Shown: piece by piece, positions 7,122 through 35,121 of the stretch
How positions within the stretch are numbered: position 1 is the stretch's first letter
Layout of the letters: every line of letters begins with the position of its first letter
Sequence record: OQ992562.1
Strand: one strand, 5' to 3'
Length of the DNA stretch: 64,000 nucleotides
Notes under the pieces: model-generated
The model's input: only the letters and a program-made list of their open reading frames with translations
What the model was told of the DNA's origin: nothing
Database searches by the model: none
Position numbers and translations under genes: made by a program

Positions 7122-7934
7122 TTAACGCATGAAGCCAGGGCGCCTATGTTTAACTGGTGAAATATCCCAGCCAAGACTTTTCGCTAGATCTGTCACATTG
7201 GTGATATCAGAACATTCAAAACCCATGTTAATTTGACGTTCACGTTCACGCTGTACCTGATATAGAGTATCAGGCGTGATAACCATTAATTGATCTTCAT
7301 AGTTCTCTAATGCAGGGGAATTCCATTTATTAGCACCGTAAATACCACCTTCCCCAACCATATCCCAAGTTGAAATCTCACGGGTATATTTGATACCGCG
7401 CATAGGATCATCTTGAGTTATTGACCTTACCGAGCAATAAGTATTCTGAGAAGGATTGGTAATAGATGCTTCGAAGTACTTACCAAAAGGACCGTATGGT
7501 TTGCATTTGCCAAGTACTAGTTTAATAGGAAGACCTTTCTCATCTGTAGAATCAACCAGAATAAGTTCCTTAATATGCGCACACACACGATCATCATCGA
7601 TTTGACGAATTCGCATTAGGTACTCATGTTCATTCATCCGTGTGCCATCTTTACGATAGGGTTCAGGGTGTTTGTATTCCATGAATAGAACACCCTTTTT
7701 AACACGGCGCATTAAAGGTGAGTCTGGATTAAACATAGATACGCCGGATGCCATTTCATAGAACATACCAGCTGAATTTCGGGTACCATAAGCTCCTAGT
7801 GGAGTTAGATAGTAACCATCCGCATCAGGTACTAATACACCTTTTTTATTAGTACCGGCTAACATATCACTGCCGATAACTACTTGGTTATTAGTACGCT
7901 GTTGCAAACCAGAAAAATTAGAATATGGTTGCAT
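7122..7934 (-). CDS. Prohead (morphogenetic) serine protease, phiKZ gp175-like
   Basis: 270 aa; His89 (EYKHP), Ser168 (CSVRS) and ALE at 208-210, which leaves a 60-aa C-terminal piece as expected for autocleavage. Confidence 0.85.
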   Translation of the reverse strand: MQPYSNFSGLQQRTNNQVVIGSDMLAGTNKKGVLVPDADGYYLTPLGAYGTRNSAGMFYEMASGVSMFNPDSPLMRRVKKGVLFMEYKHPEPYRKDGTRMNEHEYLMRIRQIDDDRVCAHIKELILVDSTDEKGLPIKLVLGKCKPYGPFGKYFEASITNPSQNTYCSVRSITQDDPMRGIKYTREISTWDMVGEGGIYGANKWNSPALENYEDQLMVITPDTLYQVQRERERQINMGFECSDITNVTDLAKSLGWDISPVKHRRPGFMR

Positions 7935-18093: not shown

Positions 18094-26869
<8,776 letters not shown>

Positions 26870-26927
26870 ATACTTGGAATAGTTATTTATTGTAACCATT
26901 CTTAAACCAATGTAATAGGTAATTAAC

Positions 26928-27233
26928 ATGTCTCTACTTAAAAAGATCGGTCTAGCTTTAATTGGATCAGAAGGACGTAAGGAAGTTTTTGAACAAGAAT
27001 TAACTAAACTATCAAATTCTAATGCAGTTATTGATCAAATGGTGATTAATTTACTGGGTAGTAAGAAGAAGTTAGATGACTTCCTAATTAAAGCTGAAGA
27101 AATTGATAATAAGAAACTAGGCTTCATTAAAAATCGAGCCGAACTTATTAAACTAGTCAAATCTAAATATTCACAAGACCCTCGGGTTGCCGATGTAGTA
27201 GTGTCACTTTACATTGGTGGTTTCATTTATTGA
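26928..27233 (+). CDS. Hypothetical protein, 101 aa
   Basis: AGGT RBS. Confidence 0.75.
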   Translation: MSLLKKIGLALIGSEGRKEVFEQELTKLSNSNAVIDQMVINLLGSKKKLDDFLIKAEEIDNKKLGFIKNRAELIKLVKSKYSQDPRVADVVVSLYIGGFIY

Positions 27234-27240
27234 GGTAAGT

Positions 27241-27933
27241 ATGTCTAAACCTAATCTTGAGTGGTTAGCTTCCTTAGAAAGTAAAGAAGCTAAGAGTACA
27301 GTAGATTCTTCCGATATGGATAATGATCAAAAGGAAGGTAGCGATAAGTCTCAACAAGATGAAGCTACTGAACCTGAGAAGAAAATTACTGCAACTGATG
27401 TACAAATTGCAATTGAAGAATATGCGCGTATCCGTGCATTAACCACTACTAAAGATCTTCCAACTGACCCTGAACCAGGTGATACTTATCATGTAAATGG
27501 GGTAGATTGGATTTATCAAGAAGATGGTGGATGGGTAACTATGCAAGGTATTTATGGCCATGAACATTTTGATGAAAATGGTCTAAATATTGAAGCAAGT
27601 GGCATTGACCAGAAATCAGGTGCAACTAAACGTTATGTGGTAACTGGTTATAATGCTCAGACTAACCCAGCTGCTATGCCTGGTGATAATCTGACTGAAT
27701 GTGTTATCCTAATGCAGAATGGACTTGTTCCAGAAGTTGGTGTAAATGGCCTAACTGCTGACTGTCTACTTAAAATCGTTAAAGATTTATTTGAAGGTTA
27801 TCAAGCAGGCCCATTTGCATGTGAAGAGAATCAGGTAGTGATTAATTCAATGGACCGTGCTCTTAGTGCAATTCATCAACGCCTCGTAAGACGTAAAGAA
27901 CAAGGTACTGAAGGTACCTATAGTGGTAATTGA
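27241..27933 (+). CDS. tad1: Tad1-like cyclic-nucleotide sponge with ~110-aa N-terminal extension
   Basis: C-terminal MQNG..GVNG..LLKIVKD..YQAGPFACEEN..R..RR..GTEGT matches the recalled Tad1 family pattern; GAGGT RBS before ATG 27241. Confidence 0.7.
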   Translation: MSKPNLEWLASLESKEAKSTVDSSDMDNDQKEGSDKSQQDEATEPEKKITATDVQIAIEEYARIRALTTTKDLPTDPEPGDTYHVNGVDWIYQEDGGWVTMQGIYGHEHFDENGLNIEASGIDQKSGATKRYVVTGYNAQTNPAAMPGDNLTECVILMQNGLVPEVGVNGLTADCLLKIVKDLFEGYQAGPFACEENQVVINSMDRALSAIHQRLVRRKEQGTEGTYSGN

Positions 27934-27940
27934 CATAAAT

Positions 27941-27958
27941 GCCTCCCTTCGGGGAGGC
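27941..27958 (+). terminator. Intrinsic terminator, UUCG loop
   Basis: GCCTCCC-TTCG-GGGAGGC followed by TTTATTT. Confidence 0.85.
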
Positions 27959-27988
27959 TTTATTTCGTATTAAAAAAAATTTGAGATT

Positions 27989-27996
27989 TATATTAC
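27989..27996 (+). promoter_or_regulatory. phiKZ-type early promoter (TATATTAC)
   Basis: A-tract then TTTGAGATTTATATTAC, upstream of ORF 28042. Confidence 0.8.
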
Positions 27997-28041
27997 TAGT
28001 GTGTAATTAGGAAACCATCTATCTAGTAAAGAGGAATCACA

Positions 28042-28596
28042 ATGAGCGTTGTAATTTTCACTGCCAGACCTATTGGTTATAAAGTTCCTGGCGCTAATTC
28101 CACTGTAAATAAGTTTGCACTAAATACAGCTAATGCACCTAGTGTATATAGTTCTTCACCAGGATCACCAATTACTGCTCAGGAGAGTAGTTGTATCTAT
28201 ACACTCACTTCAAATCATGAGTTAATCGCTGGGGACACCGATAAAGATAACTCCCTAATGAGTTTCAAACTAGTGCTTGCGTATAATAACGATACAGCTA
28301 ATTATCTAATTAGTACGCAGGTTATTGATAGTATCGATAAACTAAAAGGAGTGGAAATTATTAGTGAACTCAGTTTCAGTGTAATTGATACTGGTGCACA
28401 TATGATCCGTAGAGTGAATTCGATCGGTGTATGTGAGGCTGTCGCCGCTCGATGGTCTCCAGTTGCAATTGAACACGTGGCTAAAGCAACCGAGCGTGAG
28501 CACCCTGGTACTCCCATCGGTGATGCTCGTGAGATGATCGACTCTGGTGAAGACCTGGGTGACGTATGTACTTCATATATCAAATCGAGTAACTAG
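28042..28596 (+). CDS. Hypothetical early protein, 184 aa
   Basis: GAGGA RBS; first gene after the early promoter. Confidence 0.8.
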   Translation: MSVVIFTARPIGYKVPGANSTVNKFALNTANAPSVYSSSPGSPITAQESSCIYTLTSNHELIAGDTDKDNSLMSFKLVLAYNNDTANYLISTQVIDSIDKLKGVEIISELSFSVIDTGAHMIRRVNSIGVCEAVAARWSPVAIEHVAKATEREHPGTPIGDAREMIDSGEDLGDVCTSYIKSSN

Positions 28597-32404: not shown

Positions 32405-33122
32405 ATTATCGATGCGTATATTCTGTGCAGTATTTCTGATTAGTATTGGCATGTATACTAAAGCTAGTGTTAATTACGAACCACTTGCTTTTTATGGAGT
32501 ACCATTATTCTACTCTAATCATACTCCGCGAATTGCTCCATGTAATTTCAATAAGCAATCCAAACTGGGTAGTTGCGGTTGGACCAGTTATCCAGAAAAT
32601 TCAATAATATTGGTGGTTCACCCTAGTGATCCAACTAAACAACTACCTGTTGAATACTCGATGTACCAGGAGGTTATCTGTGAGGATGATCAGTGCTATA
32701 CATCCGATTATCATGAACCATATGGACATCTATTGGGATTTAAAGGAACTACTTATTGGTCAGTACCAACTGGATACTATTTACTAAATGGACCTAATGG
32801 GGTACATGGTGTCAAATTTGGCAATGGTCCCTTAAAAGACACTTATCCTATTCGTGATGTATACATGGTAAATAATGATAGAGTGATTGATGGTGAGTAT
32901 CTTACACTACAAAATACTAGGGGCTTTTATAATGTAGTGTGTAGTCAACTTACACAAATGTGTAAATACTTTGGTAAAGAATATACTTTACTAGAACTCA
33001 TTCAAATTATCCCATTTGTAAAGACCACCACTTGCGATGAATTCCTTTGTTACATCAATAATGATAAAGGTAAGGTTGCAGGCATCAATCCAAAACGAAA
33101 GGATATTTACGAGGGGCTGTAA
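32397..33122 (+). CDS. Predicted secreted Cys-paired protein (~241 aa)
   Basis: Signal-peptide-like N-terminus; eight Cys in four close pairs. Confidence 0.7.
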   Translation: MFKLSMRIFCAVFLISIGMYTKASVNYEPLAFYGVPLFYSNHTPRIAPCNFNKQSKLGSCGWTSYPENSIILVVHPSDPTKQLPVEYSMYQEVICEDDQCYTSDYHEPYGHLLGFKGTTYWSVPTGYYLLNGPNGVHGVKFGNGPLKDTYPIRDVYMVNNDRVIDGEYLTLQNTRGFYNVVCSQLTQMCKYFGKEYTLLELIQIIPFVKTTTCDEFLCYINNDKGKVAGINPKRKDIYEGL

Positions 33123-33484
33123 TGAACATTACCAATATAAAGCTCATCCAAACTATGGATGCTGTATTAGAGGAACTCACGAAATATCACGATAACCTCA
33201 AGCCTTGTGTAGGTATTAAAATAGAGGTTTCACCATGTGACGCTAAGTGTATACTCTTATCTGAGGATATGGTTCGTAAGGTAGTTATTGAGATCAATGT
33301 AGTTAAACCACTGAATATGCGTGTAACCTATCTCTTTGATGAGAAGATGGTTACTAAGATCAACAAATATAATTCACATTACTACACTGAATTAGCCAAA
33401 CAAATAAATACGTTCTTTTCGGATACAAGTATCCCAACACGCACATTCGATTACCATGGATTCTTTGATTATCTTGGATTCTAA
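33122..33484 (+). CDS. Hypothetical protein, 120 aa
   Basis: TAATG coupling. Confidence 0.75.
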   Translation: MNITNIKLIQTMDAVLEELTKYHDNLKPCVGIKIEVSPCDAKCILLSEDMVRKVVIEINVVKPLNMRVTYLFDEKMVTKINKYNSHYYTELAKQINTFFSDTSIPTRTFDYHGFFDYLGF

Positions 33485-33496
33485 AAGGAGATTATA

Positions 33497-33853
33497 ATGG
33501 GTTCTCTAACTCTTGAAACAGGGCGACAGATTGAGCATCATTTGCTGAATGCAATTAGCATTCATATTAATGCATCCCGGATTGACGCTACATTGCGTGA
33601 AACAGTTAATGTCATCGATAACCCTGTAACAAAACGATCTATTGCATATGTGGTTGAGAGAGGCAAGGATATCCGCATTGCAGTTTATGATACCAGCAAT
33701 GATCATCTTGGCATGATATCTCATATTGAGTCTGGTGATAGTGAATTTAAAGTTCTTAATATGGCACAGGCTGTTCGGATAACCAAATTCTCATTGAATC
33801 AATTTGATGAGGCAGCAATATGTGCAGTAAGCTGGCTTGCCGGAAATCCATAA
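33497..33853 (+). CDS. Hypothetical protein, 118 aa
   Basis: AGGAG RBS. Confidence 0.8.
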   Translation: MGSLTLETGRQIEHHLLNAISIHINASRIDATLRETVNVIDNPVTKRSIAYVVERGKDIRIAVYDTSNDHLGMISHIESGDSEFKVLNMAQAVRITKFSLNQFDEAAICAVSWLAGNP

Positions 33854-33890
33854 TACATCATTGATTAAAGTACCACTACAGCTTAATATT

Positions 33891-33946
33891 CAATCTCAGT
33901 CTAAACACTGATCCAATTAGGCTGAGATTGAAGACTACTGGGTCAG
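33891..33946 (+). other. Predicted H-type RNA pseudoknot in intergenic region
   Basis: 14-bp stem 33891-33904/33917-33930; loop CTGATCCA pairs with TGGGTCAG at 33939-33946. Confidence 0.5.
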
Positions 33947-34008
33947 CTCATTATTGCCTACTTCTAATTTGATATAGGTAAATTATAAATACAAAGTCAG
34001 GTAATGTC

Positions 34009-34383
34009 ATGGATTCATTAAAAATACAAAATATTCTCTTATGCAATAAAGCATTCAAGGCGATTGTTGAGCATCCACTTCAGATTAAATCTAATAGATC
34101 TACTAGTATTCAAGTATTAAATAATGAGTTGAATTATGGGTTGACTTATATCTTTCATGATACCGACTCTACTCGTACAGTTAAATTAACAGTACGTTAC
34201 GGTAATGTAGTAATCTCATTAGTGGATAGTAATAATAGATTAGAAAAAGAATTTACCTTTGATAATGAAGCTAACTATCAATTAATGGGTAAAATAGTTT
34301 ATTGTTATTTACGTAAAAATAAAGATGATTATTATCGTGGATTAAGTGATAGTGGTTATCTACAATGGTTAGGGATAACTTAA
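34009..34383 (+). CDS. Hypothetical protein, 124 aa
   Basis: AGGT RBS. Confidence 0.75.
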   Translation: MDSLKIQNILLCNKAFKAIVEHPLQIKSNRSTSIQVLNNELNYGLTYIFHDTDSTRTVKLTVRYGNVVISLVDSNNRLEKEFTFDNEANYQLMGKIVYCYLRKNKDDYYRGLSDSGYLQWLGIT

Positions 34384-34384
34384 T

Positions 34385-34747
34385 ATGATATTTAATAAAA
34401 TCACTCGATCTATAAAAAGAAGGCGATGTAATAAGTCTGAATTAATTGAAATTAATGAACTTATCTTAAAAGCAGCTCGTCGTCAAAACTATGATTTATG
34501 TCATCTGATTAGTTATCTTGGTGATGGTAATGATCCAGTAGTTATTGATATTTTAAAGAAAGAATATTCTGAAATATATGCCTATTATAAATCTGTATTT
34601 GACCCTGCTGATTTTGGTAAGAATTATAAAAATAAATTACATAATGATTTATTAGAGGCTATGACCAAAATAGATAAATTTAAAGAATTATGTGAAAAAC
34701 ATAATATCGACTATTCACACATTGTTGAAGATGAAATACCTTTCTAG
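34385..34747 (+). CDS. Hypothetical protein, 120 aa
   Basis: Operon spacing. Confidence 0.7.
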   Translation: MIFNKITRSIKRRRCNKSELIEINELILKAARRQNYDLCHLISYLGDGNDPVVIDILKKEYSEIYAYYKSVFDPADFGKNYKNKLHNDLLEAMTKIDKFKELCEKHNIDYSHIVEDEIPF

Positions 34748-34758
34748 GCGGAAATAAA

Positions 34759-35121
34759 ATGGAATTAATCAGTGTCAACTCAATGGCATTATTCTTTGGT
34801 TTAATTGTAGCGCACTTCATCTTTGATTTTTCATTGCAAAATGATTTCATTGCAAAGGCTAAAAATCATACTACTGAACTAGGTTCACTATATTGGAAAT
34901 GGGTATTACCTGCACACAGCTTCATGCATGGTGGCGCAGTTTATTTCATTACTGGTTCATTAGTTTTAGGACTTATTGAAACAATTTCTCACTGCATTAT
35001 TGATTATTTAAAATGTGATAATAAAATTACATTTAATCAAGATCAGTGGTTACACATTGGTTTTAAACTAATGTATACTTATCTAATTGTTTACGAAGTA
35101 CCTTTCGTAATGTATGGATAA
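34759..35121 (+). CDS. DUF3307-like membrane protein
   Basis: HFIFDF.LQ, H..MH, H..ID..K and DQWLH motifs within TM helices. Confidence 0.8.
   Translation: MELISVNSMALFFGLIVAHFIFDFSLQNDFIAKAKNHTTELGSLYWKWVLPAHSFMHGGAVYFITGSLVLGLIETISHCIIDYLKCDNKITFNQDQWLHIGFKLMYTYLIVYEVPFVMYG

Follow-up and report, generated by a model that had tools for sequence, protein, structure and literature searches.

The gp184 gene and its product

The DNA analysed here is a window of 64,000 nucleotides from sequence record OQ992562.1, and the element in question is an open reading frame (ORF) on its plus strand which is gp184 of the Pseudomonas jumbo phage phiKZ (Table 1). The frame opens with ATG and runs for 230 codons plus a stop, its product is identical at 230 of 230 residues to chain I, "gp184", of the cryo-electron microscopy (cryo-EM) phiKZ capsid structure 8Y6V, and the corresponding entry PHIKZ184 in NC_004629 bears the label "structural protein". 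At the DNA level, positions 26900-28100 match Pseudomonas phage PhiPizzaParty at 100% identity and phiKZ at 99.8%, the whole window being 99.8-100% identical to phiKZ-like phages and its position 1 corresponding to about 171229 of phiKZ. The strand opposite gp184 holds ORFs of 42-43 codons only, and three terminator-like sites were seen around the gene against 0.6 expected. An earlier note, made from the letters of this DNA alone, had read the gene as a Tad1-like sponge for immune signals fused to a putative capsid-targeting propeptide; the strings on which it drew are found where it placed them, with SLE at residues 11-13, ATE at 42-44 and AIE at 57-59, followed by the LPTDPEPGDTYHVNGVDWIY module (73-92) and then by the C-terminal block.

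Table 1. Coordinates of gp184, of the parts of its product and of the associated features in the window (nt, nucleotides; pI, isoelectric point; pLDDT, predicted local distance difference test)
Feature	Position	Strand	Basis or remark
PHIKZ184, complete coding sequence, precursor of virion-packaged Tad1	27241..27933	+	ORF and translation; 8Y6V identity; NC_004629 annotation
Shine-Dalgarno-like GAGG, 5 nt 5' of the gp184 ATG	27232..27235	+	Read from the sequence
Acidic, predicted-disordered leader, residues 1-59, motifs ending at E13 (S-L-E) and E59 (A-I-E)	27241..27417	+	pI 4.29; pLDDT < 50
Small beta "wedge" module, residues 64-107	27430..27561	+	In the mature capsid, vertex-binding complex, between gp86 and hexamer 1 centre
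G106-H107-E108, motif of the S/A/G-x-E type at the very junction of wedge and Tad1	27556..27564	+	Putative gp175 release site of the 122-residue sponge
Tad1 domain, residues 109-230	27565..27930	+	Three-stranded antiparallel sheet and two long helices
GC-rich, terminator-like hairpin (stem of 7 bp, loop of 4 nt; 27941-27958) and T-rich tail	27941..27968	+	Closes the gp181-gp184 run
gp175, head maturation protease (MEROPS S80 type), processes gp184	7122..7934	-	NC_004629 annotation; PMC11297242; PMC5694885
Syntenic block gp181 (2241 residues, tail-associated lysin), gp182 (664 residues), gp183 (101 residues)	18094..27233	+	Lies 5' of the gp184 orthologue in related jumbo phages

Residues 109-230 form a Tad1 domain

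The C-terminal part of the protein (122 residues, calculated mass 13.2 kDa) is a Tad1 domain, an assignment on which sequence, profile, fold and pocket residues agree. A single-sequence phmmer search with gp184 retrieves the CmTad1 and CbTad1 chains of the PDB at E values of 2e-6 to 4e-6, a profile built from 20 homologues reaches the PDB Tad1 chains at 3.7e-12 to 6.8e-11 and covers residues 6-123 of a 125-residue chain, and tblastn against phage genomes gives matches to the founding SBSphiJ7 "Tad1" as well as to an "anti-thoeris viral protein". The AlphaFold2 (AF2) model of residues 109-230, computed from a 70-sequence alignment, has a pLDDT of 94.6 and a predicted template modelling score of 0.83, and in domain numbering shows three strands (8-14, 21-27, 45-50) and two helices (65-81, 87-112), in keeping with the Tad1 fold, in which an N-terminal antiparallel beta-sheet precedes a pair of long helices at the C-terminus. 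All of its top 20 Foldseek matches are Tad1 structures (template modelling score, TM, 0.78/0.77; probability 1.00; E 2.5e-8), with the next match at E 0.07. This domain-only model replaced a first full-length AF2 model that was poor (pLDDT 55.8, TM ~0.44 to Tad1, root mean square deviation ~16). The earlier note had reported the likeness motif by motif and had named profile and Foldseek comparisons with Tad1 as ways of checking it; both bear it out, as do phmmer and the pocket residues described below, and the likeness greatly exceeds what chance would give. Among the remaining family searches, a Pfam-A scan of full-length gp184 and of both its halves gave no significant family, an NCBIfam scan of gp184 gave no match, and a word-indexed protein search limited to the C-terminal domain gave just 2 proteins and was uninformative.

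Conservation of two ligand pockets

Ligand pockets were mapped through a HMMER alignment of gp184 with Tad1 chains, with residue roles taken from the Li et al. preprint and conservation counted in 70 relatives (20 gp184-like proteins and 50 short Tad1 proteins). The pocket for glycocyclic ADP-ribose (gcADPR) and cyclic dinucleotides comprises F82, N92, R109 and R113 in CbTad1 (Li et al. preprint), residues that correspond to Y187, N197, R214 and R218 of gp184; across the relatives an aromatic residue is found in 67 of 70, the asparagine and the first arginine in 70 of 70, and the second arginine in 68 of 70. The other pocket binds cyclic trinucleotides and includes a hexamer contact, with R90/T97 in CbTad1 and R88/T95 in CmTad1 (Li et al. 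preprint); it is a trait of the characterised members and not of every homologue. At the positions of this pair gp184 carries E195 and N202; R or T occurs there in 0 of the 20 gp184-like proteins, and among the 50 short relatives R is seen in 6 and T in 5. On these alignments gp184 would keep the gcADPR/dinucleotide pocket and would be without a CbTad1-type site for cyclic triadenylate (cA3), and the Tad1s of jumbo phages may not sequester cA3 by the known route.

A gp184 without the trinucleotide site fits the finding that, under a cA3-signalling cyclic-oligonucleotide-based antiphage signalling system (CBASS), a sensitive phiKZ mutant is rescued by Acb2 despite the presence of native gp184 (10.1101/2025.11.23.690004). 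As to gcADPR, the passages on phiKZ Tad1 in 10.1101/2025.11.23.690004 and PMC13282480 attribute both its binding and the resulting protection from Thoeris to Li et al., Nature 2024, phiKZ not yet being mentioned in the Li et al. 2023 preprint.

Leader, wedge and the wedge/Tad1 junction

As the earlier note had described it, the N-terminal part is acidic (residues 1-108: pI 4.30; 24 D/E versus 10 K/R); residues 1-69 are predicted to be disordered, with pLDDT below 50. Motifs of the S/A/G-x-E type end within residues 1-108 at E13, E16, E44, E59 and E108. Their count was dropped as evidence on its own, given that 5 were seen against 2.4 +/- 1.3 in shuffled sequences and 6% of shuffles reach 5; across 20 homologues, conservation picks out the motifs at E13 (18/20), E58/59 (20/20) and E104-108 (15/20). 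Of the cleavage motifs that had been listed for this region, those at E13 and E59 are conserved; ATE 42-44 is kept in only 3 of the 20 homologues, and G106-H107-E108 had been missed. Around E13 the leader reads W-x-x-S/G-x-E, and an N-terminal W..S/G-x-E is common to 201phi2-1 gp280 and Psa21 gp249.

In the full-length model the wedge has three short strands within residues 82-100. The capsid chain 8y6v_I comprises only 34 modelled residues, which the full-length gp184 model matches at 100% identity with a TM of 0.82 and to which the 109-230 model gives no Foldseek match, so that the ordered capsid piece falls in the N-terminal half of the protein; going by these models, the beta module is the sole candidate for that piece. 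The reading of the N-terminus as a propeptide needs refining in that this segment is not simply disposable, the beta module being kept in the mature capsid. The wedge is also homologous to standalone proteins of Psa21 and RVTF4.

The orthologues of gp184 occur in three architectures: leader, wedge and Tad1 in the phiKZ group and two metagenomic relatives (219-230 residues); leader and Tad1 without wedge in 201phi2-1 gp280, the phiPA3 type and many metagenomic proteins (190-207 residues); and leader and wedge only in Psa21 gp249 (L003:2357-2632) and its RVTF4 counterpart (L005:2357-2635), with 91-92 residues. The Psa21 protein ends in ..GLYGH and that of RVTF4 one residue on (..GLYGHV), at the position where phiKZ has GIYGH followed by E, and tblastn at E <= 1e-3 found no Tad1 domain elsewhere in the Psa21 and RVTF4 genomes. 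This modular pattern, with wedge-only proteins ending where others continue and with leaders joined directly to Tad1, places the domain boundary, and by extension the likely release site, at residue 108. A gp175 cut after E108 would free the sponge from the wedge, and compared with SLE, ATE and AIE the G-H-E at 106-108 is the candidate motif best placed to do so. The freed product would have 122 residues, a size comparable to the median of 135 in short Tad1 relatives; an S-x-E cleavage site is documented for gp86 (PMC5694885).

Capsid location, processing and injection in the published record

In the phiKZ capsid gp184 lies on the inner surface as part of a vertex-binding complex with gp28, gp85, gp86, gp91, gp119 and gp162, where, largely as beta-strand, it closes the gap from gp86 to the centre of hexamer 1 (PMC11297242). 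The same study lists it among the substrates of gp175 and states, citing Thomas 2012, that its cleavage site had been verified earlier; most of the chain could not be resolved, and what was modelled falls short of the cleavage product in length (PMC11297242). FLAG-tagged gp184 was found by western blot to be injected into translation-blocked cells (PMC10449902). Tad1 is the only anti-defence gene that AntiDefenseFinder reports for phiKZ (PMC11724313), and orf184, there named tad1, tolerates transposon insertions, the insertion mutants competing normally (10.1101/2025.11.23.690004). According to the latter work, gp93 and gp184 each have the N-terminus wedged into the capsid; the head protease frees the C-terminus, which is injected when the next infection takes place. 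The full packaged-sponge model and the name Tad1 are thus in print (10.1101/2025.11.23.690004, PMC13282480, citing Li et al., Nature 2024), and both the Tad1 homology of gp184 and its delivery route are already known.

The earlier note had arrived at much the same picture, namely packaging in the virion, maturation by a prohead protease encoded in this window, injection with the DNA and a pre-emptive anti-defence role, and had allowed that the homology might already be known. Each of these points agrees with the record: the protease is gp175, packaging and processing follow from 8Y6V chain I and from its standing as a gp175 substrate on the inner capsid surface, injection from the tagged protein, and the delivery route, which the note had held to be its speculative part, has been published along with the homology.

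Proposed mechanism and alternatives

In light of these results and of the published data, we propose, with a probability of roughly 85%, that gp184 is a three-part precursor (leader 1-59, wedge ~64-107, Tad1 109-230) which is held in the capsid, cut by gp175 and injected as its Tad1 part, blunting Thoeris and some CBASS. Leader and wedge would bring the precursor to the inner capsid face during head assembly, with the wedge lodging in the gap that separates gp86 from the centre of the vertex-adjacent hexamer; gp175 would then cut after S/A/G-x-E motifs, a cut at E108 separating the sponge, and the wedge would remain in the capsid as a minor, non-essential cement protein. The freed Tad1 domain would enter the next host along with the DNA and sequester gcADPR made by Toll/interleukin-1 receptor (TIR) proteins through Y187, N197, R214 and R218, and presumably cyclic dinucleotides at the same place, such that Thoeris and some CBASS would be blunted before any phage gene expression. 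For gp184, the data given here or in print document its identity, the Tad1 fold with its pocket, where it sits in the capsid, its cleavage and injection, and the fact that it is non-essential; what we infer is at which residue the sponge is released, which ligands it takes up and that a CbTad1-type cyclic-trinucleotide site is lacking.

Several observations weigh against this proposal. PF24729 (Acb2_Tad1_hairpin), although present in the library, gave no hmmscan match to gp184 even at E <= 10; gp184 homologues carry precomputed weak matches to it, and Pfam-based annotation would miss the Tad1 of gp184, the family going unreported for this protein. With E195 and N202 in place of R90 and T97, gp184 may depart in part from the Tad1 mechanism as published. 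The residue at which gp184 is cut and the ligands measured for it are taken at second hand or by inference, and the description of the modelled part as shorter than the cleavage product (PMC11297242) also fits a cut at E59 alone. Finally, phiKZ contents are injected into an early-infection vesicle, from which the sponge would still have to reach the cytoplasmic signals.

The point about E59 leads to the main rival, in which gp184 is cut only on the N-terminal side of the wedge, for instance after E59, to give a 171-residue wedge-Tad1 product whose sponge leaves by dissociation of the wedge at ejection. The A/S-x-E at E58/59 is indeed the best-conserved motif of gp184, and a modelled part shorter than the product, with large portions unresolved (PMC11297242), suits a flexible, tethered Tad1. 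We nonetheless consider this course unlikely: the C-termini are described as liberated by the head protease (10.1101/2025.11.23.690004), the wedge is ordered in mature, DNA-filled capsids (PMC11297242), the G-x-E at the wedge/Tad1 boundary is conserved with wedge-only orthologues ending there, and the 201phi2-1-type proteins, which are without wedge, still have a G-x-E just before the Tad1 domain. A different objection concerns dose and timing: the sponge might do most of its work late in the infection in which it is made, as new, unprocessed or cytoplasmic protein, packaged copies being too few for the next cell. With five vertex-binding complexes per vertex (PMC11297242) a virion would hold at most 60 gp184 if each complex has one, an estimate made from the complex count, and in most phages the canonical Tad1 is a cytoplasmic protein with no extension, as reflected in the median length of the short relatives; yet injection of gp184 has been demonstrated directly (PMC10449902), and the retention of an N-terminal targeting part and a protease-type boundary across phiKZ-like genera argues for selection on delivery. 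Late action as the main role is in our view improbable, although it is compatible with packaged delivery.

The idea that gp184 is a structural cement of the capsid vertex, its Tad1-like domain inert or vestigial and without a role in immune evasion, draws on its membership of the 8Y6V vertex-binding complex (PMC11297242) and its GenBank label, "structural protein". The tolerance of tad1 to insertions and the normal competition of the mutants (10.1101/2025.11.23.690004) speak against a pure cement role, the ligand-pocket residues are conserved among the relatives as given above, and the capsid-ordered part of gp184 amounts to 34 residues, all of them outside the Tad1 domain. Anti-Thoeris and anti-CBASS function is reported in the literature. 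Published data already contradict this idea, and it can be given hardly any credence.

What the packaged and injected sponge offers the phage is protection by a protein that is delivered and not made after entry, so that signalling immunity (Thoeris, CBASS) would be neutralised from the first moment of infection, and delivery of this kind is relevant to the host range of jumbo phages and to phage-bacterium arms races. The gp184 case has been established experimentally and reviewed, and our main finding adds no new biology to it; what the analysis adds are the junction motif at 106-108, the wedge-only orthologues, the loss of the trinucleotide pair, and the fusions with capsid fragments and cyclophilin described below, which should be useful for mapping how sponges are loaded into virions.

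Comparison with known systems

Canonical Tad1 proteins (that of Bacillus phage SBSphiJ7; CbTad1 of a Clostridium botulinum prophage, 7UAV/7UAW/8SMD; CmTad1, 8KBB) share with gp184 the fold (TM 0.78) and the pocket of aromatic residue, asparagine and two arginines, and the predicted mature domain of gp184 is of their size. They differ from gp184, which is synthesised as a 230-residue precursor whose N-terminus targets it to the head and which, as part of the virion, reaches the cell in protein form. A parallel to this mode of delivery is found in T4 IPI*, an anti-defence protein that is targeted to the prohead by its N-terminus, trimmed by the prohead protease, injected with the DNA and active before gene expression. 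The two differ in that IPI* acts on a restriction enzyme, which it blocks through protein-protein binding, whereas gp184 is a small-molecule sponge, part of whose targeting region stays in the capsid as a structural element; the T4 prohead protease, gp21, is a relative of gp175 (PMC5694885).

Within phiKZ, gp93 and the other inner-body or ejection proteins resemble gp184 in having an N-terminal part on the inner capsid wall, cleavage by gp175 at S/A/G-x-E-type sites and an injected C-terminal part; gp184 is much smaller than these, lies outside the PF12699 paralogue family and has a cargo with a defined anti-defence function. Proteins of the 201phi2-1 gp280 and phiPA3 gp217 type (PHROG 23843) are syntenic with gp184 and carry an acidic leader, W..G-L-E and a G-D-E before a Tad1 domain that is 55-60% identical to that of gp184, and for 201phi2-1 gp280 GenBank notes detection by mass spectrometry; with no wedge, the head anchoring of these proteins, if any, must differ from that of gp184. 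Acb2 is, like gp184, a phage sponge for cyclic nucleotides, and Pfam groups the helical hairpins of Acb2 and Tad1 together (PF24729), although the searches made here gave no direct sequence or fold match of Acb2 to gp184.

Genomic neighbourhood and synteny

Besides gp175, the window encodes the virion RNA polymerase subunits gp178 and gp180 and the tail-associated lysin gp181. The order gp181-gp184 is common to 201phi2-1, Psa21, RVTF4, Viktualia and two metagenomic contigs, and the synteny is confirmed by the likeness of gp182 to Psa21 gp247 (66% identity). In phiKZ-like jumbo phages the gp184 slot lies 3' of homologues of gp181/gp182/gp183 and 5' of thymidylate kinase, and it is this slot that holds the three architectures. 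The earlier note had placed gp184 at the end of a run of tail genes, which holds insofar as the gene follows gp181-gp183, with gp181 tail-associated, and has a terminator-like hairpin on its 3' side; gp184 itself, however, is a head protein. No tRNA genes were found in the window. Further along, gp193-gp197 (33122-35121, plus strand) are five consecutive ORFs of 118-124 residues each; a clear paralogue array of these ~120-residue proteins was considered and dropped, a quick alignment giving only 21-26% identity with many gaps, by which such an array is neither shown nor excluded.

Tad1 at the C-terminus of other proteins

A full HMMER scan with the gp184 family profile recovers 4410 clusters with E <= 1e-3, 1684 of them with E <= 1e-10, and in about 40% of the best 150 matches Tad1 stands at the extreme C-terminus after an N-terminal extension of ~60-490 residues. 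Among 54 such extended relatives, seven begin with a fragment of a phiKZ-type major capsid protein (PF25620 positions ~142-280; PHROG 3231) and one with an N4 gp49/Sf6 gp66 family domain. The capsid-fragment-Tad1 proteins have 346-591 residues (L013:6001-7131, P0048, P0081, P0102, P0103, P0114). Besides the seven, an intact ORF of 376 residues at L013:6001-7131 in the 253.7 kb viral contig IMGVR_UViG_3300047320_000285 is an independent case of the fusion, in which residues 17-97 resemble gp120 262-332 and residues 266-373 match Tad1 at E 4.5e-12. The major-capsid fragment in such fusions might co-assemble with the capsid lattice or mimic it.

Because three architectures share one syntenic slot and capsid-fragment-Tad1 proteins occur elsewhere, Tad1 could be seen as a portable C-terminal cargo that has repeatedly been joined to head-associated modules, with sponge delivery at the protein level being common. 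We hold this generalisation to be doubtful. A general rule that a protease-type motif marks the boundary of N-extended Tad1 proteins had to be dropped, with 16 of 48 seen against 15.3 expected, and the lack of enrichment outside the gp184-like group counts against the portable-cargo reading. We know of no capsid-fragment or other extended Tad1 protein outside that group that is packaged.

Other members of this wider family differ in their partners or labels. In Burkholderia jumbo phage FLC9, gp131 (L009:4404-5420) is a 338-residue cyclophilin-Tad1 fusion, with PF00160 matched over residues 3-162 at E 2.5e-44 and a Tad1 domain that shares 58% identity with the one in a metagenomic relative. Xanthomonas phage RTH11 has a standalone capsid-fragment protein of 179 residues (L012:3046-3585). 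Short Tad1 homologues in Bacillus phage Bc431v3 (orf166, L014:1582-1962) and in several Bastille-like Bacillus phages are labelled "putative structural protein", a designation that for orf166 was assigned by similarity, according to its record.

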